Source: Octopus sinensis
Taxonomy: Eukaryota
Assembly: GCF_006345805.1 (NCBI RefSeq)
Contig: NC_043008.1
Coordinates: 33,790,001-33,854,000, forward strand
Length of the DNA: 64,000 nt
Reading direction: 5' to 3'
Below the pieces are notes generated by a model. The model ran no database searches. It had not been told where the DNA came from and saw nothing but the letters and a program-made list of their open reading frames with translations. The stretch's first letter is position 1. Each line of letters begins with the position of its first letter. The position numbers and the translations under genes are program-made. Shown here piece after piece: positions 1 through 64,000 of the stretch.

Positions 1-672
1 TATTGGTCAACACAAAACTATTGGAAAAGTAATTTATTCACCAACCCAAGATTTTGCAGAGGGAAATTGAACCTGGAACCACATGGATTTGAAGCAATCT
101 TTTTAACAAACAGTAATGTCTTGTGAAATAACAGCTGTCCTTATTGTAACTGTTTTAGATTGATTAGATGGTAGTTGCTTTTTTTGGTTAACTCCATGCT
201 TTTCAAGTGTTTCTTACCTTCTTAAGATGATACAGTGTGATTTGAGGAACATTTGGTTGCAATTATATGCTGATTCCTTGATTTGTCTCTTTTGCTCTCT
301 GATAATTAGTTGCTAGGATCCTACAGTGTGGATTGGTGGTAAATTCAGTTACTTTCATACTGGATGGAGGTGTGGATTCAGTGTCTACTGTTCAGAAAGA
401 CAGAATACCTCAGCCTCCCGAATCAGTCCAGATGATGTGTGAGGAGTGAGAAAGCAGCAAATTGGGTTGAGAAAGAATATTTGAGATGGCTCTCCTCCTA
501 AATACAGTATGAAAGGTGATTAAAATGATTCATGGTGTTTGAATGAATTCAAATAATATTAAAGGTAATAAAAAAGCTACAAATTGTTGAAATGTTTGAC
601 CATTAAAGAAGCAAAAATCAAACAAGCAAATTCTCTTTTTTAATGCTTTCCATTTTTCTCTTAACATTTCAG

Positions 673-739
673 TAATTCTTTGCAGTGTTCTTATACCAAC
701 AATAGTCCTGCTTTGTATGTTATGCATCATAGTTATCAG
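673..739 (+). CDS. Transmembrane exon of upstream paralog (copy 1) of the PLAT-domain receptor
   Basis: Acceptor ttaacatttcag| and donor |gtatgt; 67 nt, phase 1 to phase 2. Translates (V)ILCSVLIPTIVLLCMLCIIVI(R), a hydrophobic helix. Two substitutions relative to 61565-61631. Confidence 0.9.
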
Positions 740-1499
740 GTATGTAATATAAAACTACATCTTACTACTGAGACTCTTTTAGAGTATCATTATTATTTTA
801 ACTTTTTTTCTTTATTTTTACTGTACTAAGTCAGAGGATGAAGAGCAGTGCTCATCTCCCATTTTCAAGACATATAAGACTGGAAGGACGAAGGGAAATT
901 GTATTAAAAGCACCCAAAGGTCAAGTAGTCTTAGAAAACCAGTTGGCTGATTGAGTCTACCATTCAAAACAAAAACAGGAAGGATTCTTCCAACAAGTTT
1001 CTATACAGTTCTCATTTACAAAACTTCATTCACAAGGCTTATGTCTCTCCATGAGTATAGCAGAAGATACTTGACTATAGTGCTATTGAATGGGATAAAA
1101 CTAAAGACCTCACAGTTGCAAAGTGAATTTATAAACCACTTAGCTATGCCTTCCTCCGTAAGATAATCTGAACTTTGAGTTAATATTAATCTGTTTTCCA
1201 TGATATTAATTGTGCATGTATAGTGATATATACCTCCAAGCCATCATTTAAGAGAGATTTTTTAATGTTTTCTGTTGTTCTGTTTAATCCAAAGAGGGGA
1301 CAGATGACATGCAGCAGGTTATCTCTTAAGAACATCTTAAAGTCTTATGTTTTATAGCTCCTTATATAAATGTGTATTTAGATAGGCAGCTACTAGATAC
1401 CGATACTAATTTGATAGTTTTAACTGATAGATATATATTCTATATCTTTTCTGAGTTTACATTGTTGTTTCCTAATCTTCCTAATCTTTAATCCAAAGC

Positions 1500-2950
1500 T
1501 ATTCACATTTAATCTATTTGGAGGAATACATTCCACACAGAAATAGCTTCAGTATGCACAACTATCTGTCTGTGTCATATTCTGGCAAGAACAAAGTTAA
1601 CTTGTCTCTTGCTCATCTGAGCGATTGGTGACTAATTGACCAATTAGATTTCTGAAGTGTGTGTTATAAATGGGATGAGTACTGACATCATGAAACTTCA
1701 AGAGACTTGGTCTCACTTTATTACTTTGTATCCTGATGCTGGAATCTATTAATTTATCACTCTTATTACAAATATTTGAAAGGTGATAGAAACAGTTGTT
1801 GATAATCAACTCCTCCAATAACTTGACCCTCTTTCCATTCTCATTGTGTACTAAATACAGCTTCAGTTAAACTGGCCTAGTGGGTATCCGATTTTCTCTG
1901 TTAATCGCCTTTAATTCCTTGCTCTTGAGAAAATTAGTGAAAGCAATTGCATTTGACATCAGGAAAGATTTTGTCTTGTACAAGAATCTCCTGATTAAGA
2001 CATTTACTTATATGTTCAATCTGTAGTGTTGTCATGAAGGAAAGCTTGTCGTCAGTATATATACATAATTTACTTGCTACATTAATACAGGTGTTCATAC
2101 AATATAAGAAGAGTAGATTTTACATGAAACGATGTATACTACAGGTGCAGGAGATCTCCAACAGAAATTCATATTAGGCTGCTTTTTACATATCAATGCA
2201 CGTTCTTCTTGTTGTGTAGCCATGGTATGTTTCTTCACCTATCATGCCAGGTTGAATATGCAGCTCTGAGAACAGTTATGAGTGAGAGTAAACTCTACCA
2301 AAGACTGAATTCACTTTCAGTCCAAATTCACTCTGGCTTTTTCACACTAAATCCACCACTATTTGTAGGCTCTTTCCACACAGAAAGTCCTAGTCATGCT
2401 GCCAGACTATCACATGATCAAAAAGCAAGAGGTGCTGACAGGACCGAAAATGTGTTTGCACACATGATCAACTCATGGTTTTCATGTGGCTAAACATAGA
2501 TTCCAATTCAGCTGTTATAATTCTGTCTCTTGTCTCCCAGGCAGGAAGCTTTCATAACTGCATGTGCTGATGATTCTGTTATTTCCTCTCCTTAACATCA
2601 ACAACCTACTTGTGACTTCTATCACAGCTCACACTCCCTGTGCAGACAACACTAATCTCTATTCTTTCCTTATGTTACACACAAAGGTGTTGTTCACTTG
2701 CAGCTTAGCTACTTCATGTCAAATCGGCACTGCCTCTTTGAGGAGAAATCATAGAAGTATTGACATGTATGTCATGTCCCCTTCTACACTGCAAAAACAA
2801 TATAATCATTCTTGCCTTGGAGAGCATGATATAAACACTCCTAATATTACTACAAGTGTGATATCTGCCCCAACAATGTCACTGATCCCCAGTCCAAGTG
2901 GTTCCACATTCATTGCAAAAACTGTGTCCAGAAATATACTTCTGTTCTGC
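1500..2950 (-). mobile_element. Highly degenerate LINE fragments
   Basis: Minus-strand NENGKRVKLLEELIINN resembles an AP-endonuclease segment and FAMNVEPLG resembles an RT segment. Many stops. Confidence 0.3.
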
Positions 2951-3179
2951 CACAAAGTTCAAGTAAATCTCATGGCAGAAAACTGCTGCAGCATTTTGGG
3001 CTGCTACTGCTACTGCTGCTGTTGTTGTTGTTGTTAAGCAACAAGATGGGTAAGGGTGATTAGGTGATGGTCTAGGGCTTAGGGGCAGGAGACCCCAGAC
3101 CTTCGAAAAAAAAAACCTTTGGTTGTCTTCTAAATGTGTTTCTATAAAGACAAAGTAACTAGAGACGGCTAATCAGGCA

Positions 3180-5130
3180 GATGTGGAAGGTGTACTAAAA
3201 GAGATTATGCCTGATATTTGGCATCTCTCAAGAGCCAAGCAGTTTATGGGCATTTCAGTGTTCTTCAAGACTGAAGTTCTGGTTGCCAAACACTCTGTGG
3301 TTCGCTATCAGAACAAAAAATATGTGCTCCAGACGATGTATTTACGAAGGTGGATGGTGGGGATAAAGATGTCAGAAATTCCATCAGTGGGAGTTACAAC
3401 CTCCTAAAGATGAAGTGGACCTGTTGTGAGAATTGGTCTGGAACCAGTGTGGAGGTACTACTCCACATTAAACCAGACGCAATCATTTGGCATTGCGCGT
3501 TTGGTCTGACAAGGATGCCCACACTTGCCCCTTTTGTACAAGATGGCTCTTGAGCCATTGCTACAGGAGTTGGTTCTTTCATGGGGCATACCATATGAAC
3601 TAGAATGCAGGTTTGTGGCAGCTTATGTGGATGATGTCACAGTAATAGTGTCAAATGTCTCAGAAATTGAGGTAATCACCACTGCAGTATGGGAGTACAA
3701 AGCAGCAAAAGGAGCAAAAAATAACCAGAAGTTACTGGGCCTGCAGCTCAGCAACTGGAGAGGCAGATCCATACCATCTGATAGCATGGTAGAACACTAG
3801 ACAGAAGGACTGGTTAAATTGCTTGGGGTCTTGTTTGGTCTGGACCTCCTGTTAGACAAGAACTTGGAGTGGGTGACAAACTGGGTAGCCAGTCTCCCCC
3901 AGAAATAAGCAGAGAGAAAGCTGTTATCACTACTGTCATCTACTACTATCTGACTGTTGTCCCTTGCCCTCTTTTCTGGTTGATCAGCTGGAGCAATTGC
4001 TCTTCCCACTTCCTGTGGAAGGGACATGTCTCACTCCTCAGTCGGTCCATCTGCTGTCAACAGGTGCTGAGTGGAGGACTGGGAATGCCATGGCTAATGA
4101 TATGCAGACATGTACTGAGTCTCATTGACAGAGCAACAGTCCTGGATTAAGCATAGATCAAGTAAGGGCACTTTGCATCTGGAGTGTAAGCAGGCTCTCA
4201 CAGCCCTCTGCTAGTCAGGCAATGTAGTCAGTGGAAATTCTACATTGGAAATCTATAGAAGATTAGTGGTGGGCAAAAGCAACGATGACCTCAGAGGAAT
4301 TCTAGGAAGGATCAATTATCTGGTCTTTTCTTGAGCAATTTCAGGCTGGAGTCTATCTATAATTTCCAGAAATCCTTGGCCTAATAGTGTTACCAGGGAG
4401 CTCTGCCAGTTCAAGACAAGCTTTACAAGCTTGGAAGTGCCATCAGACAGACATGTCCTAGATGTGGATAGGGCAATGAAACTTCTCTGCATGCACTCAT
4501 TTCGAATTTGTGGAGCATTGTCAAACAGCTGTTGATGCATGTAGGACAAATCTGGTTATCAGACGACTCCATCATGAGGATCACCCAGCCACCTTCTTTT
4601 GGCCATGGAGGGAAGGCAGTTTTCCTCTGTCTGATGGCTATGGCGAAAGAGGAAGTGTGGTGGGCATGGTTGAAAGGATTGAAGACAGGTACTTTCTCTT
4701 CAGCTGAGCCCCCATTGAATTTCTCAAGTTCCACTTGAAAAGGAAAATGAGGGTGGTGAGGAAAGTGCTGCCTCCTAGTATTGATGTTGAAAGGTGGGTG
4801 AATGTAGTGAGGATGATCCATGTGAATGGGCCTACTCTGAACATACACTTGTAAGCCAGGGGGTTTGAGAAGATGAGAGGTGCTTGCTTGAGGTGCCTTT
4901 GGAAGTCAGGGTGAGGAAAATGTGTGGAGTTCCTTGGTTGTCCTTAGGATAAACTCCCATTATGTGGAGAATTTTATTGTTTATTTTTTGTTGTTAATTG
5001 TTATTGTTTAATTGTATGTACAAATTGTTGTGCTAAACTCCCCTTGCATTGCATCATCCCTGTATGTTTTTTGTTCAGATCTTGTGGTCAATAAAAACAA
5101 GATCATTAATATTATTATTATTATTATTAT
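3180..5130 (+). mobile_element. Tx1/L1-clade LINE relic
   Basis: QGCPHLPLLYKMALEPLL, AYVDDVTV (YADD box), CPRC..ET..H C-terminal zinc knuckle, AATAAA and an (ATT)n tail near 5090-5130. Confidence 0.8.
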
Positions 5131-5514
5131 TTGATGAAAACACACAGATTATTTTGCTGGGTATCATGGAAAGTGTCAGCTGTCCACAGCCAGCAGACTA
5201 AGGTGACACTGACAGTTGTTGTCATGTTAAATACAATATTTAGCAGCATTTCTTCTGGATATTTACATGCTAAGTTCAAATACCACTGAAGTTAAATTAG
5301 TGCTTCATTCTTCTGGGGTTAATATAATATATACCAATTGACTCCCCACCAGCCCCAAATTACTGGCCTTGTTCCTAATTTTGAAACCATCATTATCATT
5401 ATAAAACAAGATTAGTAAGAAGTATTATTATTTCTTTTTTTTGTGATTATTAACAAAATTTAATTCTAAAATCTACTTAATGTTGTCTGATTAAATATGC
5501 TAACATTTTCTTAG

Positions 5515-5950
5515 ACACAGGTACAAGAAATCCAAATCAAATGTGATATCTGAAGAAAAGACCAAGAAGAGTACCACAACGACCTGTTTACCAGAGGAGA
5601 TAGAATCACAACTAAATAATACTTTGAAACAGCAAGCAGCAGAGATATTGCCCCCAAATAATGCACATTCAATTAGAAATGATCCTTGCATGATGGAAAG
5701 GGAATTGCATTCCACTGATGCATATTATTCTGTCATAAAAGATTTATGTATGGTTGATGATAATGTTGAAGAATATATGTATATAGCTAAAAAGGATATA
5801 TGTTCAAATGTAAATGATAAATATGAAAATGGCTCAGATACAGTTCACAGTGATTTACGTTTCACTGAGAATGAAGGATATTATGTAAATTCAGCTGAAA
5901 ATGACTTATGCTCTGGTAAAAATGGCATATATATTGATATCTTGCCATAA
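5515..5950 (+). CDS. Terminal cytoplasmic-tail exon of upstream paralog (copy 1)
   Basis: Acceptor aacattttcttag| in the phase that joins exon 673-739 in frame: R-HRYKKSKSNVISEEK...YIDILP*. It contains track ORF 5543..5950 and is paralogous to 63511-63946. Confidence 0.9.
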
Positions 5951-6000
5951 GTGATTAAGATAACTTACTTGAAAGTGTTTTTCTTCTAAAAATTCAATCT

Positions 6001-6168
6001 AATTATATCTAAAGAAAACAGATACATAAAACAACCCTCAATGTCAACACTTCAAAAACCTAATAGAATATTTGAAATATGTTTTCACTGAAATAATTAA
6101 ACAAAATACCAGCCCCTGCCACACAATTATATATACACTCCTATAAATAAACAAGTATTTATTATCAT
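6001..6168 (-). pseudogene. nad4L: NUMT: 5' part of mitochondrial nad4L
   Basis: Minus strand, invertebrate mitochondrial code: ATG at 6168 ... LFQWKHISNILLGF[fs]EVLTL. Strong G depletion on the + strand, as in mtDNA. Confidence 0.75.
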
Positions 6169-6172
6169 AACT

Positions 6173-6236
6173 GTTATAATAGTTTATATAAAACATTGGT
6201 TTGGCAAACCAAAATTAAATACTACATTTTTATAAT
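6173..6236 (+). pseudogene. trnT: NUMT: degenerate mitochondrial tRNA-Thr
   Basis: gttataa-ta-gttt atat aaaa-c-attgg tttggca aaccaa... cloverleaf arms with a mutated anticodon loop. It sits between nad4L and trnS2, as in octopod mtDNA. Confidence 0.65.
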
Positions 6237-6237
6237 T

Positions 6238-6300
6238 GGTTACAAGTAAATCAAACACTTACAAAAGGTTTTCAAAACCCTTATTTATCCAATATAATCT
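6238..6300 (-). pseudogene. trnS2: NUMT: mitochondrial tRNA-Ser(UGA)
   Basis: Minus-strand anticodon arm agggt-tt TGA aa-acctt, followed by a T-arm-like gtaagtgtttgatttac. Confidence 0.75.
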
Positions 6301-6384
6301 AATAATCTAATATATATATATATATCCATACCATATCTAAAATACACTGAACTAAAAAAAAAAATATATATATATATATATCAC

Positions 6385-6720
6385 CTTAAAAATCTGCTTA
6401 ATCATTTCATATCTGCTTAATCATTTCAACAGGACAACTTCCAGTCCGTGTAAAAAAATACAACAAAAAGCACCAACCAGAAATCAATAACAAAACTACT
6501 CTAAAAAATTATAACTTAATCCTATACACCCTCTAATATGTAAAAGAAGACAAACAAATATAACAATAATATTACCAAACTAACAACTCCACCCCTAATT
6601 TGTTTGGAATCAACCATAAAATAGAGCAAATAAAAAATACCAGTCAGGTTTAATATGGATAGGAGTAACTAAAGGATTTGTAGGAATAGAATTTTCCACA
6701 TCCCCCAATTAGGAAACAAT
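6385..6720 (-). pseudogene. cob: NUMT: 3' part of mitochondrial cytochrome b
   Basis: [36 protein letters not shown] and GSCPVE..YEMI, i.e. the PEWY region, with frameshifts. Confidence 0.9.
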
Positions 6721-7122
6721 TCCAATACCTTAGCCTTGCCATTGTCCCGTGGTAATGTAGCGAGCATGCTGGCTGGCTTCAGTAGTTTCATTTGAAATTT
6801 GTGGTGTGAGACCAAATGTAGCACTTTGTATTGCATTGATGTTTCTTTTGTCTCTCTTCCTTCTCTTTTCCTTTCTTTCTCTCATCCTTTTTTTTTATCC
6901 TGATTTTATTCTTTTATTTGTCTTTCTTTTGTAATACATTATATTAAGGAAAAATAAGAATAAGAGATATTTTTTCATACAATAAATTTGGAAATAATAT
7001 TTTTAAGGCTCAATTCCATTAAATTATTAAATTTTAATATCTTCGATTAATTTTCCTTAATATAAATCACAGTTCAATATTTGATGCTGAACAGTTGTAT
7101 TTATTATTTTAATTATTAATTA

Positions 7123-7312
7123 AGGTGATGAACTGGCAGAATCATTAGTATGCTGGGCAAAATGCATAGTGATATTTCACCTGCCACTACGTTCTGAGTT
7201 CAAATTCTGCCTTTCTGACTTTGCCTTTCATCCTTTCGGGGTCGATAAATTATGTATCAGTTGCGCACTGGGGTCGATGTAATTGTCTACCCCTTCCCCT
7301 CCAATTTCAGGC
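7123..7312 (+). mobile_element. tRNA-derived SINE (octopus-type family A)
   Basis: A-box-like tggcagaatc and B-box-like gagttcaaattc; related copies at 19543, 21350, 25373, 31215, 43640 and 56860. Confidence 0.7.
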
Positions 7313-7332
7313 CAAGATTATATTAATTATCT

Positions 7333-7543
7333 CTCCTTTTACTCTTTACTTTTACTTGTTTCAGTCATTTGACTGTGGCCGTACTGGAGCACCACCTTTA
7401 GTCAAGCAAATCATCACCAGGACTTATTCTTTGTAAGCCTAGTACTTATTCTATTGGGGCTCTTTTGCCGAACTTTGTCAAGCAATGTTGGAGGCGGGGG
7501 AGACAGACACAGACACACAAACATATACACACACATGTATATA

Positions 7544-7639
<96 letters not shown>

Positions 7640-7800
7640 CATACATACATATATATATACATATATACGACGGGCTTCTTTCAGTTTCCGTCTACCAAAT
7701 CCACTCACAAAGCTATAGTGAAAGACACTTGCCCAAGATGCCATGCAGTGAGAATGAACCTGGAACCATGTGGTTGGTAAGCAAGCTAATTACCACTCCT
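7333..7800 (-). mobile_element. Composite tRNA-derived SINE (family B) with internal (TA)n
   Basis: Minus-strand head gtggtaa...ggttccaggttca; body shared with 13885, 24833, 35712 and 48200; about 65 TA units inside. Confidence 0.75.
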
Positions 7801-7889
7801 GCACCAAGTCATTATTTTTATTATTTGGTGTGAAAATAAACATAACAAGCAACTTTTGGCATAACATTTAAAAAATGGATCCTATTTTA

Positions 7890-8335
7890 TAAACTTAATT
7901 CAACTAATGCAAATAATATGAAAAGAAAACCTAAAACATCTTTTTATCTATGATAATGATGAAAAGGAATCTTATCTAAATCACTGTTTAAACCTAAACG
8001 AATACCTGAACTCCCCTTATGTATAAGCAAAAAAATATAAAATAACCAAACCCACAATAATAAGGGCAACAAAGAATGAAAAAAAAAATCAACTTAAAGT
8101 AGCATCATCAACAAAAAATCCTCCCCAAATTCAATAAACTAATGCTTCCCTAATATAAGGAACTTCTGAAACTAAATTAGTAGAAACTGTAGCTCCCCAA
8201 AAAGACATTTGACTTCATGGTAATACACACACAACAAAACCAGTCAATATAACTAAACTATACAACAAAAACCCCACATTTCAAGAATAAATATTTATAT
8301 ATAAACCATAATACAAACCATGACCAATATGTATA
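7890..8335 (-). pseudogene. cob: NUMT: middle part of cytochrome b (continuation of 6385-6720)
   Basis: HIGHGLYYG..VLPWSQMSFWGATVSTNLVS.VPYI...YWIWGGF.VDDATL...LNSDLDKIPFH..KDVLGF..ALVELSL. Collinear with the 3' piece across a ~1.2 kb insertion. Confidence 0.9.
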
Positions 8336-9103
8336 TCTTCATCATCATCATTCGAATTAGGTTATGGGCATGAGACAATCGTAGTGGTTTTACTTTTTAT
8401 ATTATATTAAACATTTTAATACTTTTTGAAAGTTATATATATTTAATATAAATAAATAAATAAATAAAAAATAAAAAAATATATATATATATAAATTTAT
8501 AAATATAAATTAATAATTTAAAATTTTTAACTTTAAATTTAAATGATTTAAATTTTGAATTTTATATTTTATATATTTTGTATATTATATTAATTAATTT
8601 TATTTCTATGTTTTGGTTTATGTTTTTCACTGTTTGATTTGCCTAATAGTGGTTTTATCTCTAATTCAATTTATATATATATACATACATATATTATAAC
8701 ACAAAATAAGCTAGGGGTTAAGAGTGCAACCCACTAAGGGATAGTGGAATTATTCGTTGGATAAAAATACAAATTTAAGTATAATTTTAACTTCAACTTT
8801 TATGAAAAGAAAAAAATCCTCATATTGATATTGGTGTATATTCGTGCGTATATAAATACATGTACATGTTGCTTCTATTTGTTACCCACACGCATGAACC
8901 TGTATGTATTAAGAAGAACTATATACTAAAAGCCATGGTCTAACTGTATGTTTTTTACATATTATATACATATATATATTTGTTTGTATGTATTGTGAAT
9001 TGATTATCTTGTATTGTAATATTTGATATATATTAGAATCTATTATAATATGTATTGTCAAGTGAATATTACTATAAATCTAATAATATTGTAATTATTG
9101 ATA

Positions 9104-9139
<36 letters not shown>

Positions 9140-12100
9140 CATCATCATCATCATCATCATCATCGTTTAACGTCCGTTTTCCGCGCTAGCACGGGTTGGA
9201 CGGTTCGACTGGGGTCTGGGGAGCCAGGGGCTGCCCCAGGCTCCAGTCTGGTCTGGCAGTGTTTCTACAGCTGGATGCCCTTCCTAAAGCCAACCACTCC
9301 GCGAGTGTAGTGGGTGCTTTTTACGTGGCACCTGCACAGGTGCCAGAGGGGTCTGGCATCGGCCACGATCGGTTGGTGCTTTTTTTTTTATGTACTACCG
9401 GCACAGAAGCCAGTCAAGGCGGTGCTGGCATCGGCCACGTTCGGATGGTGCTTTTTATGTGCCACCGGCACAGAAGCCATTCGAGGCAGGGTTGGCATCG
9501 GTCACGTTCGGATGGTGCTTTTTATGTGCCACCGGCACAGAAGCCAGTGGAGGCTGCACTGGCAACGGCCACGTTCGGATGGTGCTTGGCCACGTTCGGA
9601 TGGTGCTTGGCCACGTTCGGATGGTGCTTGGCCACGTTCGGATGGTGCTTGGCCACGTTTGGATGGTGTTTTTTATGTGTCACCGGCACAGGTATCACAA
9701 CTACTGTTCCCATTGATATTTGGTTCGATGTTCATGTACATGCACTTGACTCAACAGGTCTCCTCAAACACAGCAAGATATTCCAGGATCCCACGATCAG
9801 TTGGTGCTTTTTATGTGCCACCTGCACAGAAGCCAGTCGAAGCTGTGCTGGCGTCGGCCACACTCGGATGGTGCTTTTTATGTGCCACCGGCACAAGAAG
9901 CCAGTCGGGGTGGTGCTGGCATCGGCCACGTTCGGATGGAGCTTTTTATGTGTCACCGGCACAGAAGCCAGTGGAGGCTGCACTGGCAACGGCCACGTTC
10001 GGATGGTGCTGGCGGGGTTGGCATCGGTCACGTTCAGATGGTGCTGGCGGGTTGGCATCGGTCACGTTCGGATGGAGCTTTTTATGTGCCACCGGCACAG
10101 AAGCCAGTGGAGTCTGCACTGGCAACGGCCACGTTCGGATGGTGCTTTTTATGTGTCACCGGCACAGGTATCACAACTACTACTGTTTCCATTGATATTT
10201 TGTTCGATTCTCATGTACATGCACTTGACTCCACAGGTCTCCTCAAGCACAGCGAGATGTTCCGGGATCCCACGATCGGTTGGTGTGTGCCACCGGCACA
10301 GAAGCCATTCGAGGTGGGGTTGGCATTGGTCACGTTCGGATGGAGCTTTTTATGTGCCACCGGCACAGAAGCCAGTGGAGGCTGCACTGGCAGCGGCCAC
10401 GTTCGGATGGTGCTGGCGGGGTTGGCATCGGCCACGTTCGGATGGAGCTTTTTATGTGCCACCGGCCCAGAAGCCAGTGGAGGCTGCACTGGCAACGGCC
10501 ACGTTCGGATGGTGCTTTTTATGTGTCACCGGCACAGGTATCACAACTACTGTTTCCATTGATATTTGGTTCGATGTTCATGTACATGCACTTGACTCCA
10601 CAGGTCTCCTCAAGCACAGCGAGATGTTCCGGGATCCAAGGTACTTTGGATGGGCAGGGGGTATGCGGAACTGGTGCCGGAAGCATCTCGGGTCTTAGTA
10701 GTCACAGCACATCTCCAGAGATCTCGGTCCTTCGCCATTGCCTCAGTGAGGCCCAACGCTCTGAGGTCATGCTTGACTACCTCATCCCATGTCTTCCTAG
10801 GTCTACCTCTCCCCCTGATTCCTTCAACTGTTCGGGAGTGGCACTTCTTCACACATCTCTCCTCATCCATCCGCAGTACATGACCATACCATCGCAAGCG
10901 TCGCTCTTGCACACCGCATCTGATGCTTCTTATGCCTAGCATTTCTCTCAGGGTGCTTACACTCTGTCGTGCATTCACACTGACATTACACATCCAGCGG
11001 ATCATGCTAGCTTCATTTCTTTCAAGTCTACGCATGTCCTCTGCAGTCACGGCCCATGTTTCACTGCCGTGAAGCATGGCGGTTCGCACACATGCATCAT
11101 ACAATCTACCTTTCACTCTGAGTGAGAGACCCTTTGTCGCCAGTAGGGGTAGGAGCTTTCTAAACTTTGCCCAGGCTATTCATATTCTAGTGGTGACACT
11201 CTCTGTGCATCCACACCCACTACTAACTTGGTCACCCAGGTAGCGGAAACTATCAACTACTTCTAGTTTCTCCCCCTGGAGTGTGATGGAATCTGTTTTT
11301 TGAGTGTCTGTGGTGTCTATTGTCCCTGTGCATCTGCCGCACATGAAATCTATCTTATCAGTTAATTTCCCTTTGATGTTGCTGCACCTCTTATGCGTCC
11401 ATAGCTTACACTGGGTGCATCTTATGGAGTTTCTACCTACACCTTTCCTACAGCTCGAGCAGGGCCACCTGCCCGATGGGGTGTGTGCTGAGTTCGCCTT
11501 TCTGCATACTATAACTTTGGTCTTCGCTACATTTACTCTAAGGCCCTTAGATTCTAACCCTTGTTTCCACACCCGAAATTTCTTTTTTAGTTCCGGTAGT
11601 GATTCTGCTATGAGGGCCAGGTCATCAGCATAAAGGAGCTCCCAGGGGCAACCTGTTTTGAATTCCTCTGTTATTGCCTGGAGGACTATGATGAATAAAA
11701 GGGGACTGAGGGCCGAGCCCTGGTGTACACCTACTTCAACCCGGAATTCTTCACTATATTCGTTGCCAATCCTAACCTTGCTGACAGCCTCTCTGTATAG
11801 AGCCTGTACAGCCCTTATTAGCCATTCGTCAATCAACAGTTTCCGCATCGACCACCAGATAAGGGATCGGGAAACCCTGTCAAAGGTTTTCTCCAAGTCC
11901 ACAAAAGCTATGTAGAGGGGTTTATCTTTAGCTAGGTACTTCTTCTGCAGTTGTCGGACCAGGAATATAGCATCAGTGGTGCTTGTACCTGGCACAAAAC
12001 CGAACTGCATCTCATCTAAGCAAATTCTCTCCCTAATGAGATGGGTTATGACCCTCTCTGTGGTCTTCATCACCTGATCCAACAGTTTAATACCCCTGTA

Positions 12101-52697: not shown

Positions 52698-52700
<3 letters not shown>
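50205..52700 (+). mobile_element. RTE LINE, 5'-truncated, next to (TA)n
   Basis: RT motifs (NYRGIKLLD, FVDMEKAFD, HQGSVLS, LLYADD); stop at about 50746 and frameshifts; repetitive 3'UTR and (GAT)n tail. Confidence 0.93.
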
Positions 52701-52736
<36 letters not shown>

Positions 52737-53900: not shown

Positions 53901-54155
53901 CTGGCAACACACAAACGGGAGATACCTCTATGGTTGTCACATTCACATTTGTTGCCATTGTCCTGTGGGACTGATCCTGGTGCTCAGATTGAGGAGAAGA
54001 GTTCACATAACTTGTTCAGTAGGAAACAAATTTATGGAGACGGAAACACATCAACATCAATTGTCAAGCAGTGGTGATTGTGCCATGCAGTGAGACTGAA
54101 CTCAGAACCATGTGGCTGGGAAGCAAGCTTCTCATCGCACAGCCACTCCTGCGTC

Positions 54156-54232
<77 letters not shown>

Positions 54233-54345
54233 ATATATAAGCCCCATCACGGTAGAGAGAGAGAAATAGAGTAGGTAATAAAGAGCTTATCATTAAGAAA
54301 AGCTGACAATAGTAATAGGAAGGTATATATATATATATATATATA

Positions 54346-55226
54346 TACGAGGTCTGATCAATAAGTATCCAGACTGCTGCAATAGTATCAAAGCCAGAGC
54401 ATGATGAGGGAAACCACCTGGTAAAGATCACCTCCGAATTCTGCTGGGCAAGTGCACAAAGCTCCAACGTTCTAGCTCACTTCTACTGTTTCCAGCACTG
54501 CTTGGAAGGAAGGTGTGTAGAGTGCAACCATTGCCTTGACTATGACAGAGAAAGTTGTCATGGCGATACCTGCTCTGAGGCTCATGCAAAGTTGCAGAAA
54601 GTTATGAAGAGGAGTGTATGAGCTGTGCACAAGTGTACAAGTAGTTCAGACGTTTCCAAGATGGTAAAAAAAATGTCGATATTGATTACCATTCTGGGTG
54701 GCCTGCAACCAGCAGAACTGAGAAAAACATGGCAGATGTGCGTGCAGCAGTGTGGGGAAATTGTTGAATCACCATCCATGAGTTATCAGTGGATGTGCAG
54801 ATTAGTTACGGTTCGGTTCAGTCTATTATCACTGAAGTTTTGGTCATGAGACACGTGTCTGCCAAGTTTGTGCCAAAGCTGCTTTCAGCTGACCAGAAAC
54901 ACACTTGGTTCTCAGTTGCACAAAATCCTGATTGCATCGAGAATGATGAAAACTTTTTGAAAACTTTGCATAGGTCTCTGAGCAGGTATTACTAAGCTTT
55001 TGGCAAAATTTAATGCAGATTATCTGTTTAACTTTGTGGTTATTGTGATGACCACACACCAAACCCCTTCTTTCCAAACACTACTGTAAAAAAGGAGCCA
55101 GAATGTTAAAACTTAATATGCATGCACAACAGCGTTCTAGGTTAATCTGTGCCAAGTGGCCTCATTCTGTGTACCTCAGTTTGCTACTATGGCAACAGCC
55201 TGGATACTTATTGATCAGACAAGGTA
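54346..55226 (+). mobile_element. Internally deleted mariner element (same family as 48690-49570)
   Basis: TIRs tacgaggtctgatcaataagtatcc / ggatacttattgatcagacaaggta. Confidence 0.85.
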
Positions 55227-56002
55227 TATATGATTTATTTAGTTTTAAGTTCCTTTTAAATGTACCAGCATTAATGAGGTTGCCAAGTGTCTTGCAAGAC
55301 AAAGATCGTTTGAGGGGTGTGGTATTGATGGTGGTGGCTTTGTGCCAGGCGATGAGAGGTTGGAGTATGATGGGGGGATAGAAACAGGGGTCTTGCTGCC
55401 GAGGAGACAGAGTTTCCCCAGTTAGAGGGTGATGAGATTGAACAAGAGAGAGAGAGAAAGAGAGAAATGGTGGTGAGCCAGTTACTAACAAAGCAACAAG
55501 ATTTTCTGTGTTGAAGGAGTTCCCGGTGGGCATGGGGATGAGTCGGTGTGTTGGTTGACCTGTCAATGCATACACCCAAGTGTGTGCATCTATTCACTTA
55601 AAGAATTTCACATGAATCTATCTATCTATCTATATATATATATATATATATATGTGTATGTGTGTGCGTGTGTATGTGTATGTTTGTCCCTCCAACATTG
55701 CTTGACAACTGATGCTGGTGTGTTTACATGCCCGTACCTTAGTGGGTCAGCTAAAGAGACCGATAGAATAAGTACCAGGCTAACAAAGAATTAGTCCTGG
55801 GATCGATTTGCTCAACTAAAGGTGGTGCTCCAGTATGGCTGCAGTCAAATGACTGAAACAAGTAAAAGAATAAAAGGAAATGTATATATATCAATTTAGA
55901 ATGAGGGTGAGAAATTGGATATTGATTTAATTAAACTAACATCAATTTAACACCAGTGGTCTAGCATATTAAAAATCTGAAGGTTCAGTAAACTGTATTA
56001 TA

Positions 56003-56284
56003 TACAAATGAAAGGGATGACCACTATGTGGACAACCCTTATGCTAGAAGTAGATCCGCTGTGGTCTTACCACTAAGAAATGTTCTCAACAAAAATTTAG
56101 CAAACACCAGAATGTAAGCGAGCAAGACAAATGTAAAGTAACAAAATATAGATAATTTATATTTTGTTACTTTTCATTTGTCTTGCTTACTTACATTTTT
56201 CTTGGGAACATTTCTTAGTGGTAAGATCACAGCGGATCTATTTCTAGAATAAGGGTTGTCCACATAGTGATCATCTCTCTCATT

Positions 56285-56288
<4 letters not shown>
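56003..56288. repeat. Fold-back palindrome (~140-bp arms)
   Basis: gaccactatgtggacaacccttatgctagaagtagatccgctgtg... pairs with ...cacagcggatctatttctagaataagggttgtccacatagtgatc; loop near 56150. Confidence 0.85.
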
Positions 56289-56323
<35 letters not shown>

Positions 56324-56424
56324 ATGTATATATGTATGTATATATGTGTGTTTACATATATATGTATATATACATTTAGTAAAAGGTGAAAGATTTATCC
56401 GCTTGACATTTTTTTAATGCCCAG

Positions 56425-56532
56425 ATATTGTTAAGGAACGAACTATTCCATATATTCCATATGGCAGCACCTCTAACATAATTACTACAACAGATGATCA
56501 AACAGGTTCAGAGGAAAATACATCAGTTCTTG
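56425..56532 (+). CDS. Coding exon 5: Ser/Thr-rich extracellular stalk
   Basis: Acceptor tttttttaatgcccag|, donor |gtatgt; 108 nt, phase 1-1. (D)IVKERTIPYIPYGSTSNIITTTDDQTGSEENTSVL(V). Confidence 0.8.
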
Positions 56533-57249
56533 GTATGTATTTCTTTAAAGTGTATATGGAATGCTTGTTCCCCCTTCTATAAACTTCATCCATCTATCAA
56601 CATTGTTCATATTCATCCAACTGTCCATACACAGGATAGGACTTGTTTAGCTCAATTTTCTTCTTCTATCATATTTTTCCCCATTTTTATTTTCACTGAT
56701 CCCTCTGTGAATTGTGTCATCTCTGTCAACAACCTGTAGCCTTCTCAGCCTGCAGTCCCACTTTGTCAAGAACTCAGTAACAGTACACTATTTCTCCTTG
56801 AAACCCATTATTTGTTTACAATGAAGAAGAAGAATCCTTTCTATTATAGAAACAATGCCTGAAATTTTGGGGGAGGGGCTAGTCAGTTAGATTAATCCCA
56901 CTGCACAGCTGGTACTCATTTCATTGACCAAAAAGACAGTCAACTCATGCAGCATTTAAACTCAGAACATAAGATGGACAAAATGCTGCTGAGTATTTTG
57001 TCCATCCAGCTAACAATCCTTCCAGTTTGCTGCCTTAATGAAGAGGAATAATACAAGGAAGAAGCATTACTATGGAAGTGTTATAGTACCAACATATACA
57101 ATTTGAATGACCTATGTCAGTTACTTAAAAAGTTACACCTACTTTTGCTTTATTTTAGTTGCAGTCCTCATAACAAGCTATATACACTATTCTTTAATCC
57201 TTTTGAAATGTATTTCCCAAATGAACTTTTCTTTGATTTAATTTTTACA

Positions 57250-59300
57250 TTGATGGATTGGTCTTTATAACCAAATTTATATAATAATATACTGTCTTGA
57301 ATCACACTACATTTGGTTCATCCAAACTGAATTTTTGCTAGTTTAAAAATTTACTCGCAAAACCTTTTCTGTAAATTAGTTCTACCAACTTAAAATCTGG
57401 ACATTTATGCAACACCAATTATCTCTCATATTCTACCATCATGCTTGCTATCCAGATAGATAAAGATCCACAAGATAGGACTTGTTTAGCTCAATCTTCT
57501 TCTGATATTATATTTTCCTTATTTTCTTTTTTCACTGATCCTACTATTCCCGTTTCTTTGTTTCCCTTTCTCCCCTTCTTCTCTTTTGGTACGTTTATTT
57601 CTACATTTGTCTTATAACTTCCCTTGATGACCAAAGTGTAACACACAGAAAAAAAAAGACAGGAACAAGCAGTATAATATTATAATCTTCATTGTTAGAG
57701 CTTTAACACTGCTTTTCATACTTGTGACAATGTTAAATTGAACTGTTGTTTCTAGCAAAAGTCTTGTTCACGCTTGTGCTTTAAATTCACTTCAGAAGCA
57801 AAACAATAAACATTGAGCAGTGATTTCAAACTAAACAATACTGCCTTATTTATCATATATCGCCAGGGAATTTTCTTCAGCGAGGAATTTCCAAACATTT
57901 TGTGCCACTAATACTTTTTAGCTAGGAATTCGCCTGTTGTAGACCTCAAGCTTTTTTACGCTTGTGGTATACTTACATTCTTTTCAAAATTCGGTGGCAC
58001 ACCTGAACAAGGACTAGAACTAAAATTATAAGGAAACTGTTTATATTCAGGTTACACTGCGGCACACCTAGCATCATCTTGTGGCACACCAGCATGCAGC
58101 AGCATACCACTTGCAGAGCACTGCAGTAGGTTTCATTGCTGAATATTATCTTTTCTTCCAAAATGTCTTTTAAATAATCACAATAACTGTGAGTTTCTTT
58201 TTTTCTGTGAATTTATCAGTCTTTAAACTTTTCCCTGCACTGCTTTTTGTTTCATTATTTAAAAATATTTTTTTTTCAAATTACGTTTTTGTTTCTTGTC
58301 CATCATTTTAGCAGAGAGACTCATGAATGAAGGGATTTACATTTTCATCTTACATCTCTGTACCTCTCTGTAGGGGGAAACTGGTATGGATGGGGTTATG
58401 TTTCTTTTTGTTCTTGTTATTATGAAAAAAGGTTTGTCTCTTCATGAATCTCTATTCGCAGTTTTGCAGCCATCGACTTTTCGACTCAAGTATTTTATTT
58501 GATTTGGCTTCTTGTATCTCTATGTCATTGTAGTTTTTCAAGTAATTTTCCGTTGCTTTGTTCAGAGATTTCTTTTTGCATTAAGGTGTCACATATCCCA
58601 AGTTTCACTTTAAAGCGACGCGTGCAAAGCTCTAGAATGTTAATGTATGCTTTGAATCTTTGGTGTGCAAGATTTATTCTGGCTTTTGTTTCTTCATTTG
58701 GTTCTGATGTAATTTTCTTGGGACGAAATTTTCGTGGAAAAATCACTGGTTCTTGGTTTATCTATTGTGCGTATGTGTCTGTTAAATTTTCGTTTCTAAT
58801 TGCTTTCCCGTATGCTTCTTTTCTTTGATTTAATAAATTATTCCAGCTCTTTTTCATCTGAGTTCTTTTTCTTGAATGCTTCACTCTCCAAATGAATTTC
58901 ATACTATTCCTTAAAGATATCTTGTGTATTGGAATGTTCTCTTGTTAGTAGGGTAACACAGGAGGTTATATTTGGAGTTCTGATAGTGTGTTTGTATATA
59001 ATGTTTAAGGAAGCAATGGAATGATATTTTGTTGCCAAATCAGTAGTTTCGTTCTTGGCCACAATATTCATCCATGCTAAAGCAAGCCAATTTGATATGT
59101 TAATCTGACCTTCTATAGACTTTTGAATATACATATTAATGGCTTTCTGTAAAATGTCAGCCACTTGTACCAATATCCAATTATTAGATCTCTTCCAGGT
59201 ACCTTCCCATTATACAGTTTGCCTACAGCTATAGCGAAAGTTTCCAGGTTAATTGCATACATTCTGTTGTTGATGTTGGTACAGAATTCTCTCCTAATTG
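57250..59300 (-). mobile_element. R4/Dong-like LINE N-terminal and RT fragments
   Basis: KYHSIASLNIIYK (RT start motif) and KARINLAHQRFKAY; heavily degenerate. Confidence 0.55.
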
Positions 59301-59938
59301 TAGTTAGTTAGTTAATGCTTTAGAGTAATTAGCCATTCCTCTAGAGCTTAATGTGATGAGTCACCACAGTACTGGTTTCCCTTCTATTTAACCTATCCCA
59401 TCATCCATCTTCTCTCTCTCTCGCTCTCTCTCTTTCTCTCTCCAACTCTCTCCTTCTCTCTCTCCTGCTATGACTAACCAGTGACATTAATCTTTCTCTT
59501 CCATCTCCTCATGTCATTTCCATTACACCAATCCAATATTGTTTCCTCTTGACAATTGCTGTCTCACAACAATAAAAGTGTTCTTTCCACCCTATTTTAA
59601 CTATTCCCTCAACACCTCACCTAGAGTCATCCTTTTTCCTCTTATTCTCCCTTTCAGCCAGCGCATGGCTGAGATGACACAAAAGCATGACAACCTCTCT
59701 AGTGTCGATGTCAGAAAACCTGCATCCAGTACACTTTGTAAAGTGGTTTGAATTAGGAAGATTATCCAGCTGTAAAAACCATGCTGAACCTGAGATATCT
59801 GAGCAAGACATCATCCTTTAATCTCTTGGATTCTGTCAAACCATCCAGGCCATCTCAACATGGAAAACAGACATAAGATGTTGATGATGGCATGTGTATG
59901 TGCATGTAATTTATACACCCCCCACACACATACACACA

Positions 59939-59986
<48 letters not shown>

Positions 59987-60158
59987 ACTCCAAGAAAGTT
60001 AGGGGTTGTGAATCCATCCCACTAAGGGATAATATCTATCAAATATACTGTTGGTAGAATACCCAATTATTAATACACAAGTGTTTTTTATTGCAATGCA
60101 ATAACATTACCTAGTATATTAAATGGGTGAAGATAAAGAGATATTTTACCATTAATTT

Positions 60159-60721
60159 ATATTGCAAATAAGAAAAGAGAGGAGAACAATAGTTGGTTCA
60201 TCAACTTTAGGACATTAAAAATGTTAACTTATTTATTTATTAAACTGATAATTATAATAACATATATACATATAGTATATTATTCTATGCATATAAGATA
60301 AAGATACAAGTAATGATTAAAAACCATGAATATAAATAAGTAAATAACTTACAGCTGTTTCAGCCCATAGATAAAAGTATCTCATTCTGCCTATATTAGT
60401 CAAGTGTATTCAGGTAATAGGCAGATGAAAATGAGGTAGCCTAGATATATATATATATAAGTACCTCATTTTCATCTGCCCATTACCTCAATACACTTGG
60501 CTAATATAGGCAGAATGAGATACTTTTATCTATGGGCTGAAACAGCTGTAACATATTTTACTAATTTATAGTCATATTTTTAAATAATTACTTGTATCCT
60601 TATCTTATATGCATAGAATATGTGTATGTATGTTGTTATAATTAATAAATAAATAGGTTAACATTTTTAATGTCCTAAATTTGATGAACCAACTATTGTT
60701 CTCCTCCATTTTCTTATTTGC

Positions 60722-60726
<5 letters not shown>
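60159..60726. repeat. Fold-back palindrome (~285-bp arms around a (TA)n loop) of Penelope-like tails
   Basis: The arms share gctgaaacagctgtaa with 13590; divergence is mainly substitutions. Confidence 0.85.
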
Positions 60727-60769
<43 letters not shown>

Positions 60770-61564
60770 TACCTACCTACATATGTACATATAAACATTC
60801 AGACATACAAACCAACAAATAGCATGCACAACAGAATTCATCGCAATTTTTGTCTACCATTCACAAGATATTGGTCAACACAAAACTGTTGGAAAAGTAA
60901 TTTATTCACCAACCCAAGATTTTGCAGAGGGGGATTAAACCTGGAATTACATGGATTTGAAGCAATTTTTTAACAAACAGTAATGTCTTGTGAAATAACA
61001 GCTGTCCTTATTGTAACTGTTTTAGATTGATTAGATGGTAGTTGTTTTTTTTCCTGGTTAACTCCATGCTTTTGCAGTGTTTCTTACCTCTTAAGATGAT
61101 ACAGTGTGATTCGAGGAACATTTGGTTGCAATTACATGCTGATTCCTTGATTTGTCTCTTTTGTTCCCTGATAATTAGTTGTTAGGATCCTACAGTGTGG
61201 ATTGGTGGTAAATTCAGTTACTTTCATATTGGATGGAGGTGTGGATTCAGTGTCTACTGTTCAGAAAGACAGAATACCTCAGCCTCCCGAATCAGTCCAG
61301 ATGATGTGTGAGGAGTGAGAAAGAGCAAATTGGGTTAATGTTCATCAGAACAATGACTTCAGAAAAGAATATTTAAGATGGCTCTCTTCCAAAATACAGT
61401 ATGAAAGGTGATTAAAATGATTCATGGTGTTTGAATGAATTCAAATAATATTAAAGGTAACAGAAAAGCTACAAATTGTTGTAATATTTGACCATTAAAG
61501 AAGCAAAAATCAAACAAGCAAATTCTCTTTTTTAATGCTTTCCATTTTTCTCTTAACATTTCAG

Positions 61565-61631
61565 TCATTCTTTGCAGTGTTCTTATACCAACAATAGTCC
61601 TGCTTTGTATGTTATGCATCATAGTTACCAG
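61565..61631 (+). CDS. Coding exon 6: transmembrane helix, copy 2
   Basis: Acceptor ttaacatttcag|, donor |gtatgt; 67 nt, phase 1-2. (V)ILCSVLIPTIVLLCMLCIIVT(R). Confidence 0.9.
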
Positions 61632-61659
61632 GTATGTAATATAAGACTACATCTTACTT

Positions 61660-62480
61660 GTAGAACACTAGATAGAAGGACTGGTTAAATTGCTTTGGGT
61701 CTTGTTTAGTCTGGACCTCCTGTTGGACAAGAGCTTGGAGTGGGTGACAAACTGGGTAGCCAGTCTCCCCCAGAAATAAGCAGAGAGAAAGCTGTCATCA
61801 CTACTGTCATCTACTACTATCTGACTGTTGTCCTTTGCCCTGTTTTCTGGTTGATCAGCTGGAGCACTTGCTCTTCCCACTTCCTGTAGAAGGGACATGT
61901 CCCACTCCTCAGTCGGTCCATCTGCTGTCAACAGGTGCTGAGTGGAGAACTGGGAATGCCATGACAGTTTTCCTCTGTCTGATGGCTATGGCGAAAGAGG
62001 AAGTGTGGTGGGCATGGTTGAAAGGATTGAAGACAGGTACTTTCTCTTCAGCTGAGCCCTCATTTACTTTCTCAAGTTCCACTTGAAAAGGAAAATGAGG
62101 GTGGTGAGGAAAGTGCTGTCTCCTAGTATTGTTGTTGAAAGGTGGGTGAATGTAGTGCGGATGATCCATGTGAATGGGCCTACTCTGAACATACACTTGT
62201 AAGCCAGGAGGGTTGAGAAGATGAGAGGTGCTTGCTTGAGGTGCCTTTGGAAGTCAGGGTGAGGAATATGTGTGGAGTTCCTTGGTTGTCCTTAGGATAA
62301 ACTCCCATTATGTGGAGAATTTTATTGTTTATTTGTTGTTGGTATTTGTTATTGTTTAATTGTATGTACAAATTGTTGTGCTAAACTTCCCTTGCATTGC
62401 ATCATCCCTGTATGTTTTGTGTTCAGATCTTGTGGCCAATAAAAAGAAGATCATTAATATCATTATTATTATCATAATTA
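61660..62480 (+). mobile_element. Paralogous copy of the Tx1/L1 relic with deletions
   Basis: Matches 3787-4092 joined directly to 4617-5130. Confidence 0.8.
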
Positions 62481-62561
62481 TCTGATGAAAACACCCAGAT
62501 TATTTTGCTGGGTATGATGGAAAGTGTCAGCTGTCCACAGCCAGCAGACTAAGGTGACACT

Positions 62562-63206
62562 TGGTCATGCTTCAAGGACATTGCAAAGAATTCTTGCAGT
62601 TTCAAGCAATGATGATTTTTTTAGGTTCTTCTACTTTTACATTTGTACCAATCCTTTTGATCTGAGTTGGTAGTTGAGTGCTGATACTTCCAAGTGCATC
62701 AGTTACAATTGGTACCACATCTACTCTCCTCAATGACCACAACCTTAGTATTTCCCACTTCAAATTGTCATAGTCGTTCAGTTTCTCTTCTTTCTCTTTG
62801 ATCCTGTTGTCACCGGGTCATGCTATGTTGATTATCATGCATGGTCTTCCTTCTTTATTCCACCACAACAATGTTCAGTTTCCAATGTCTGGTCAGGTGA
62901 TTGCACTGAATCATTGCATCCCACAAGATTTTGCACTTTTCATCTTGGTGATTCCTTCAAGGGTTTGCTCATACCACATCTTTTTTTGTTATAGGCTGTG
63001 ATAAGGTGTTAAGTTAGCAGAAGTGTTACCATGTATTTCTTCTGGTTTTATGTTCTGCGTTCAAATACCATCAAGGCTAACTTCACCCTTCATCCTTTCA
63101 TCCAGCTGAGTATTGGAGTCACTGCAACTGACTAACCCTCTCCTCCCAAATTTCAGACCATGAGCCTATAAAAAAGATTATTACTATTATTATTAGGATG
63201 AATCAA
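62562..63206 (-). mobile_element. R4/Dong-like 3' fragment plus SINE, present only in copy 2
   Basis: KILWDAMIQCNH...VVPIVTDALG endonuclease region. The paralog reads ggtgacact|gacagttg without it (about 5210). Confidence 0.8.
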
Positions 63207-63510
63207 ACTGACAGTTGTTGTCATGTTAAATACAATATTTAGCAGCATTTCTTCTGGATCTTTACATGCTAAGTTCAAATACCACTGAAGTGGTATTAGT
63301 GCTTCATTCTTCTGGGGTTAATATAATATGTACCAATTGACTCACCACCAACCCCAAATTACTGGCCTTGTTCCTAATTTTGAAACCATCATTATCATTA
63401 TAAAACAAGATTAGTAAGAAGTATTATTATTTTTTTTTGTGATTATTAACAAAATTTAATTCTAAAATCTACTTAATGTTGTCTGATTAAATATGCTAAC
63501 ATTTTCTTAG

Positions 63511-63946
63511 ACACAGGTACAAGAAATCCAAATCAAATGTGATATCTGAAGAAATGACCAAGAAGAGTACCACAAGGACCTGTTTACCAGTGAAAATAGA
63601 ATCACAACTAAATAACACTTTGAAACAGCAAGCCGCAAAGATATTGCCCCCAAATAATGCACATTCAATTAGAAATGATCCTTGCATGATGGAAAATGAA
63701 TTGCATTCCTTTGATGCATATTATTCTGTCACAAAAGAATCATGTATGGTTGATGATAATGTTGAAGAATATATGTATATGGCTAAAAAGGATATATATT
63801 CAAATGTAAATGATATATATGAAAATGGCTCAGATACTGTTCACAGTGATTTATGTTTCACTGAGAATGAAGGATATTATGTAAATTCAGCTGAAAATTA
63901 TTTATGCTCTGGTAAAAATGGCATGTATATTGATGTCTTGCCATAA
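63511..63946 (+). CDS. Coding exon 7: Tyr-motif-rich cytoplasmic tail, copy 2
   Basis: Acceptor aacattttcttag|, phase 2. R-HRYKKSKSNV...YIDVLP*; contains track ORF 63539..63946. Confidence 0.9.
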
Positions 63947-64000
63947 GTGATTAATATAAATTAATTGAAAGTGTTTTCTTCTAAAAATTCAATCTGAAGA

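Follow-up and report, generated by a model that had tools for sequence, protein, structure and literature searches.

A probable head-to-tail cluster of Octopus-restricted receptor genes with a PLAT-like outer module and a tyrosine-motif tail

Lineage-specific receptor arrays, such as those of the octopus protocadherins and chemotactile receptors and the vertebrate KIR/LILR-type clusters, consist of paralogs in the same orientation that are separated by transposon-rich spacers and vary in exon content and module number. A 64,000-nt stretch of the Octopus sinensis genome (RefSeq assembly GCF_006345805.1, contig NC_043008.1, positions 33,790,001 to 33,854,000 of the forward strand; hereafter the window) shares these features, and very likely samples a head-to-tail cluster of receptor genes restricted to Octopus. 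We read the window as containing one complete member (copy 2) as well as the last two exons and the flank of its upstream neighbor (copy 1), the two being true paralogs. Like those arrays, the octopus family bears marks of gene conversion and of rapidly evolving exons; unlike them, it is small, with ~3–5 loci seen per species, and is built on another type of domain. Introns are very long in O. sinensis and Octopus vulgaris (38–84 kb per gene) compared to those of Octopus bimaculoides (13 kb). The duplication itself is ordinary gene-family expansion; it is the outer domain that is of an unusual type.

Two further groups of described proteins are relevant to this family. Classical PLAT/LH2 domains (PF01477), which occur in lipoxygenases, pancreatic and lipoprotein lipases, polycystin-1, and LOXHD1, are cytosolic or form parts of secreted enzymes; PLAT/LH2 is the N-terminal domain in lipoxygenases and the C-terminal domain in pancreatic and lipoprotein lipases. 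Such domains bind lipids, membranes, or partner proteins, often in a Ca2+-dependent manner. The adaptors LAT, NTAL, SCIMP, and PAG have a single transmembrane helix, a CxxC motif near the membrane, a basic juxtamembrane stretch, and a non-catalytic tail with YxN and YxxM/I/V motifs.

Self-BLAST of the window returned four collinear blocks, all +/+, between positions 1–6000 and 60869–63995, at an offset of 60,868 bp. These pair 1–766 of copy 1 with 60869–61658 of copy 2 (93.1% BLAST identity), 3789–4092 with 61660–61963 (96.1%), 4617–5210 with 61965–62561 (96.1%), and 5208–6000 with 63207–63995 (95.2%), and their bit scores (496–1251) are well past chance level. The homology is also seen in a MAFFT alignment. 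An earlier reading of the DNA letters (the original prediction) had reported this recurrence of the last two exons in the same orientation, with open frames and splice sites kept in both copies, and both statements are borne out. Its estimate of about 6% substitutions is too high: the copies differ by 3.3–4.4% when substitutions alone are considered and by 4–7% once indel columns are counted.

The transmembrane exon is found at 673–739 in copy 1 (VILCSVLIPTIVLLCMLCIIVIR; acceptor ending in ttcag, donor beginning with gtatgt) and at 61565–61631 in copy 2, and the cytoplasmic-tail exon at 5515–5950 in copy 1 (145 codons plus stop, with the Tyr motifs YYSV, YMYI, YENG, YYVN, and YIDI) and at 63511–63946 in copy 2, all on the + strand. 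The frames are open and the AG/GT sites identical in both copies. Copy 1 also has a 22-nt ATG mini-exon (543–564, +; MNSNNIK) with an in-frame TGA directly 5′ of it; the copy 2 equivalent is at 61435–61456.

Only the 3′ part of each copy falls in the repeat as seen here, copy 1 (1–6000, +) being cut by the window start and copy 2 (60869–63995, +) by the window end; both alignments stop because the window ends there, and the full extent of the repeat is not readable from the window alone. It can be followed further in two homologous loci, L002 from an independent O. sinensis assembly (CM016870.1, 33.70–33.72 Mb), which matches window 51463–64000 with 0.13–0.21% substitutions in unique flank, and L003 from O. 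vulgaris, which matches window 27942–64000 with ~0.8% divergence. In both, the sequence 3′ of copy 2, past the window end, is homologous to the window from 5548 to ~17.7 kb. The flank 3′ of copy 1 (6001–18935, +) is paralogous (~3% substitutions) to this copy 2 downstream flank in L002 and L003, and to the downstream flank of a further O. sinensis locus, L001. Based on the homology of the two downstream flanks, the duplicated segment is at least 17–19 kb long.

The remaining exons of copy 2 were reached through longer homologs. A full HMMER scan with a profile of the transmembrane region plus tail, against 1.8 billion representatives, yielded the O. vulgaris proteins P0003 (265 aa) and P0004 (333 aa), and a follow-up search added P0006 and P0010 from O. 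vulgaris as well as LOC106876762 and LOC106876757 from O. bimaculoides; homologs were then mapped onto the window by tblastn. Coding exon 1 (25683–25728) contains the start codon and signal peptide (MNRIFILLSLLQIVY) and was placed with P0004, P0006, and P0007 and by its splice sites. Exon 2 (29219–29284), a linker (SVGQSKTIILNSQLQPEPISK), was mapped from exon 2 of an O. vulgaris paralog, L004. Exon 3 (36248–36504) encodes the first 86 residues of a six-cysteine PLAT/LH2-like module, as indicated by tblastn mapping, an AlphaFold2 model, and Foldseek, and exon 4 (45460–45553) encodes the last 30 residues of the module (IYLMNLNTSATYRCTLDDPDADNKGCQLKP; tblastn mapping and splice sites). Exon 5 (56425–56532) encodes a Ser/Thr-rich stalk (DIVKERTIPYIPYGSTSNIITTTDDQTGSEENTSVL) that is 100% identical to that of O. 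vulgaris P0003 and O. sinensis L002. All of these are on the + strand, as are the transmembrane and tail exons, for which the splice sites and the assembled coding sequence agree and, in the case of the tail, the open reading frame (ORF) as well.

The resulting coding sequence has seven coding exons (25683–63946) and 1074 nt, is in-frame, and has AG/GT at all 12 junctions. Its predicted product is a type I membrane protein of 357 aa, comprising a signal peptide, a short linker, the module, the stalk, a transmembrane helix, and a tyrosine-rich tail. The coding sequence is intact, and the multi-exon, non-catalytic receptor gene that had been postulated here is therefore real. Two working ideas were abandoned: that no exons exist upstream of the transmembrane exon, drawn from Pfam scans of ORFs, was overturned by the longer homologs from the full HMMER scan, and an ectodomain-less LAT-like adaptor, drawn from RefSeq models of 177 aa, was dropped after the seven-exon assembly. 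The Pfam scan of all + strand stop-to-stop ORFs of at least 50 aa in the window had found RVT_1 and the mariner Transposase_1 alone.

Those RefSeq models, LOC118765597 and LOC118765596, are the two O. sinensis proteins matched by a tail query, and both begin at the equivalent of the mini-exon. They are truncated, and their start at the ATG mini-exon probably reflects an annotation artefact or else the use of an alternative start. In O. vulgaris, the first coding exon of the model CAI9731029 is an ORF (38341–38439) inside a transposase remnant at 37801–38975 (+), which we read as pogo/Tigger-like and which has no Pfam match; the models CAI9731027 and CAI9731028 also start in a transposon-like ORF, and such starts are annotation artefacts. 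Other models (P0007, P0008, and P0011 from O. bimaculoides and P0006 from O. vulgaris) stop just after a module, in KVIAM or TVIAM, and have no transmembrane exon, a pattern suggestive of secreted isoforms with several modules or of intron read-through. Coding exon 2 is flanked by 345-bp direct repeats (28165–28509 and 29642–29986; 96.5% identical), and a stretch of 679 bp that includes this exon (window 29206–29883) is missing from O. vulgaris L003.

Further copies, anticipated by the original prediction, are present in all three species. L001, a third O. sinensis paralog located 300 kb downstream, is nearest to copy 1, from which it differs by 1–3.4%; it was considered as the copy 1 ortholog and rejected, given a baseline of 0.2%. 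O. vulgaris L004 is paralogous to window 21.3–63.7 kb, along the entire gene. In O. bimaculoides, L005 contains a tail exon of one copy, then 5.8 kb of spacer, a complete gene with three modules, a further 7.7 kb of spacer, and the next signal exon, in that order and all on the + strand; the receptor family has thus conserved its head-to-tail arrangement. The similarity between copies 1 and 2 is thus a matter of recent duplication, or homogenization, within an older array.

The spans of these genes are heterogeneous: the gene covers 38 kb in the window, compared to 84 kb in L004 and only 13 kb in O. bimaculoides. Since the units vary in both exon content and length, 60.9 kb is a local spacing and not a defined repeat unit, and the predicted unit of about 60 kb describes one spacing only. 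A regular array of six units was considered from the distance between L002 and L001 (303,451 bp, or 4.99 × 60,868), which is possibly a coincidence, the units being clearly heterogeneous. A 591-aa gene model on the same strand spans both ends of L001 and L002 (CM016870.1, 33.70–34.02 Mb), covering at least 326 kb and enclosing the receptor copies.

The ectodomain module is 115 aa long, with six cysteines and NxS/T sequons, and occurs once in copy 2 and three to four times in P0007 and P0010. Eight aligned modules were the input for AlphaFold2, and the resulting model (predicted local distance difference test score, pLDDT, 73.8; predicted TM-score, pTM, 0.69) has eight strands. Foldseek against the PDB gave 54 matches at E ≤ 0.001, the top one being 6n2w_B (E = 1.9e-5); the best 50 of these 54 have TM-scores of 0.5–0.75 across the full module, and are proteins that we take to be PLAT/LH2-domain proteins, namely 5-, 8R-, 12-, and 15-lipoxygenases, lipoprotein lipase, pancreatic lipases, and RAB6IP1. 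In the model, the module shares with PLAT/LH2 a beta-sandwich of eight strands over ~115 residues, and in our reading its sequence pattern, W.I.F...GT....V.L......RG....F.F...W.L..I.L.....Y.C, recalls that domain. Unlike PLAT/LH2, it has six conserved cysteines and N-glycosylation sequons, is extracellular on a single-pass receptor, and can be repeated three to four times. Judging from this model, the module is probably a divergent extracellular PLAT-type sandwich, one that the family profile does not recognize. A module profile search of PDB sequences found nothing. The UniProt label "Ig-like" on O. bimaculoides members is not borne out, as the Pfam scan contains no immunoglobulin-superfamily domain and the fold matches PLAT and not immunoglobulin. 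A literature search returned nothing relevant on these locus identifiers or on extracellular PLAT domains in cephalopods.

The transmembrane helix contains a CxxC motif (LLCMLCII) and is followed by a basic stretch, RHRYKKSK, and a tail of ~145 aa without a catalytic domain. The tail has YxN motifs (YSNV, YENG, and YVNS) together with YxxM/I/V motifs. YENG, YYVN, YMY, and YID are invariant in all aligned tails, and the tyrosine of YSNV is present in all except copy 1, in which it is Cys (DICSNV). The single helix with its CxxC motif, the basic stretch, and the non-catalytic tail with YxN and YxxM/I/V motifs are shared with LAT, NTAL, SCIMP, and PAG, but the resemblance is at the level of motifs only; unlike those adaptors, the full-length octopus protein has a real ectodomain, and its tail lacks a canonical immunoreceptor tyrosine-based activation or inhibition motif. 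In Pfam, SCIMP (PF15050) matches weakly over the transmembrane region and tail (16.9–17.4 bits compared to a cut-off of 27; E = 0.006–0.009), with no match to LAT, PAG, or another family; the 174-aa form has no Pfam match, and a tail profile search of PDB sequences found nothing.

The C-terminal end differs among tails by a frameshifting indel (window 5940–5950 and 63936–63946). The tails in the window and tail A of L002 end in YIDILP or YIDVLP before the stop, while those of L001 (~16090–16110) and tail B of L002 end in YIDMESCHK. Past the window end, the orthologs of copy 2 bear a second, 5′-truncated tail exon, the result of a local tandem duplication of ~448 bp (L002 12084–12519 and ~12560–12976; L003 ~34201–34866; on the window side, 63511–64000). 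The RefSeq model LOC118765596 splices the first tail copy to the second.

Several points weigh against the interpretation of this locus as a cluster of paralogous receptor genes. Exons 1–5 of copy 1 fall outside the window, public gene models of the family are truncated or fused, and the signalling proposal made below is a reading of motifs alone. The Pfam PLAT profile gave no match at E ≤ 1 for P0003, P0004, or P0006–P0009, and the PLAT assignment comes from a medium-confidence model of eight closely related sequences. To these can be added the rates of coding change considered in the next paragraph. Among the alternatives, the notion that a single locus is represented twice, as uncollapsed haplotypes or through duplication in the assembly, is largely refuted, and we give it hardly any credence: both copies are cut at the window ends and the homology starts at about the window start, as it would at an assembly join, but the copies differ by 15–20 times as much as the window differs from the independent assembly of O. 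sinensis. Because 3.3–4.4% is far above 0.2% (O. sinensis) and ~0.8% (O. vulgaris), the copies are paralogs and not haplotypes, as had been argued before. Moreover, L002 and L003 are orthologs of copy 2 itself, sharing its structure and keeping the copy 2-specific indel pattern, and copy 2 is conserved in these two assemblies together with the whole of its upstream gene; the 3.0-kb, 524-bp, and 645-bp differences between the copies, described below, recur in other paralogs and species; and at least three distinct paralogs are found in O. sinensis and O. vulgaris. We also consider it quite unlikely that copy 1 is a partial 3′ duplicate, a gene fragment with the transmembrane region, tail, and downstream flank but without ectodomain exons of its own. 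Such a fragment would be compatible with the last two exons alone being visible in the window, with the 177-aa stubs in O. sinensis RefSeq, with the absence of a stalk-1 exon within 10 kb in L001, and with the homology between L001 and copy 2, which fades ~1.1 kb 5′ of the transmembrane exon. This break, however, reflects the absence from copy 2 of stalk exons 2 and 3, which L001 and L004 retain, and not the end of a gene; L001 has a stalk-3 exon in its upstream region, which shares homology with the gene body of L004. In O. vulgaris, CAI9731027 and CAI9731028 connect an exon-2-like exon, stalk exons, and the transmembrane exon to a copy 1-type tail, and in O. bimaculoides the tail exons precede complete neighboring genes. 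With exons 1–5 of copy 1 lying beyond the window, duplication of the whole gene is a probable reading for this particular pair, one that has indirect support from L001, L004, and L005. The sole evidence for a copy 1 counterpart elsewhere is the near-identical tail of CAI9731028, which has one difference (Y in place of C in KKDI[Y/C]SNV) over a ~123-residue tail.

Paralogy of the copies would also hold if the array members were real duplicates that are largely non-functional, that is, neutral or decaying lineage-specific ORFs kept similar by gene conversion, a reading that we regard as unlikely. It is here that the coding changes count against receptor function. In the transmembrane and tail exons, the ratio of nonsynonymous to synonymous rates (dN/dS) is 0.76 between copies 1 and 2 (6 synonymous and 19 nonsynonymous changes) and 0.5–2.6 between other pairs of paralogs. 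The comparison of copy 2 with its O. vulgaris ortholog gives 0.75, with proportions of synonymous and nonsynonymous differences in exons (pS 0.043, pN 0.032) that are close to each other and compare with ~0.008 for introns. These ratios, at about 1, give no indication of purifying selection. Copy 2's ortholog in O. vulgaris has also lost exon 2 and one module cysteine, so some family members may be decaying, and the frameshift at the extreme C-terminus (ILP compared to MESCHK) and the local duplication of the tail exon are in keeping with decay. Set against this, the 1074-nt ORF of copy 2 is intact over seven exons with every splice site canonical, and the indels inside the tails are in frame. 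In addition, the six cysteines, the glycosylation sequons, and most of the tyrosines are kept from O. bimaculoides to O. vulgaris, which indicates long-term constraint on the family. We therefore retain a head-to-tail cluster of true receptor paralogs as the very likely reading of the locus.

Between the window and L003, the exons at 36248–36504, 45460–45553, and 63511–63946 diverge by 3–5%, compared to ~0.8% in the surrounding introns, and synonymous and nonsynonymous rates are both raised in exons. Of the 14 substitutions in kb 36, 11 fall within the 257-nt module exon, where O. vulgaris also has a 12-nt deletion and the lost cysteine. This exon divergence and the dN/dS values fit gene conversion plus weak or diversifying constraint.

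The indels that distinguish the copies are in the introns. A 3.0-kb segment with a reverse-transcriptase remnant of a long interspersed nuclear element (LINE) occurs in copy 1 (767–3788, +; RVT_1, E = 0.0033) and in O. sinensis L001, and is absent from copy 2 and L004. It has LINE ORF2 motifs on both sides of the junction, yet in L004, the outgroup paralog, it is missing at that very breakpoint, so its origin by insertion or by deletion is ambiguous. A 524-bp segment of copy 1 (4093–4616, +) was most likely deleted in the copy 2 lineage, as it is also present in L001 and L004. A 645-bp segment with a LINE 3′ ORF remnant (62562–63206, −; flanked by a 3-bp ACT repeat) is found in copy 2, in the orthologs of copy 2, and in L001, but copy 1 and L004 lack it. 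The distribution of these indels across paralogs is a mosaic that is incompatible with one tree, and copy 2 differs from its O. sinensis ortholog by 2.35% locally (61965–62561) compared to the baseline of 0.2%; together these indicate exchange between paralogs.

These results bear on the claim that the copies differ by independent indels of transposable elements and nuclear mitochondrial segments (NUMTs). The copy-specific LINE-derived segments are real, but the differences are partly deletions and form a mosaic instead of a set of independent insertions, and there is no NUMT signal in the copy-specific segments by Rfam (0), ARAGORN tRNAs (0), mitochondrial-type ORFs under code 5 (none), or Pfam (RVT_1 alone), although this did not include a direct BLAST against the mitochondrial genome.

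Of the transposable elements elsewhere in the window, a LINE at 9140–13194 (−; reverse-transcriptase ORF 10610–12799 on the minus strand; 67-bp satellite tail) is missing from the homologous positions of L001, L002, and L003, and is thus specific to the unit of copy 1. The same LINE family has three copies in the window, at 9150–13195 (−), 38880–41715 (−), and 50205–52740 (+), with 75–86% mutual identity, each joined at one end to an array of 62–67-bp tandem repeats (GGTGCTTTTTATGTGCCACCGGCACAG...). A mariner-like transposase remnant (16560–17900, +; Pfam Transposase_1, E = 5e-7) is located in the copy 1 downstream flank that is common to other paralogs. Just 5′ of the start of the copy 2 repeat is a foldback element (60133–60752) with nested inverted repeats, the arms of which are 64–111 nt long and 85–95% complementary; bounded by (TA)n at 59930–59986 and 60722–60790, it makes up most of an 857-bp insertion relative to L001.

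The two copies are the products of a segmental tandem duplication, for which unequal crossing-over in this transposon-rich region is the presumed mechanism, and they later diverged by substitutions, deletions, and transposon insertions, with probable sequence exchange between paralogs. As for the protein, the most likely mode of action suggested by its sequence and the fold model is that the PLAT-like module would bind a ligand, be it a lipid, a membrane, or a protein. A cytoplasmic kinase would then phosphorylate tyrosines of the tail, to which Grb2/Drk- and PI3K-type SH2 adaptors would be recruited. A role in immunity or recognition, proposed for this gene from its tandem arrangement, may be correct. 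In a more specific and rather improbable form of this idea, the family would consist of undescribed Octopus-restricted, single-pass recognition receptors that use one to four extracellular PLAT/LH2-like modules, also in secreted form, to sense ligands of lipid or membrane nature (such as lipoproteins or the surfaces of microbes or damaged cells), that signal through LAT-like YxN/YxxM tails, and that are diversified by tandem duplication, gain and loss of modules, and gene conversion. If this is true, the locus would represent an immunoreceptor-like cluster in an invertebrate, based on a domain for which no other use as a receptor ectodomain is known.

As far as these sequence searches reach, the family is unannotated and restricted to Octopus. 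Its description corrects current annotation, namely the 177-aa O. sinensis stubs, the O. vulgaris models that begin in transposon ORFs or fuse neighbors, and the "Ig-like" label, and brings to light a small Octopus-only family of unusual architecture, in which an extracellular PLAT-like module, a mucin-like stalk, and a tyrosine-motif tail are combined. The locus also offers a compact example, from a cephalopod genome, of birth-and-death evolution plus gene conversion. If expressed, these genes would be testable candidates for lineage-specific recognition or signalling in cephalopods.

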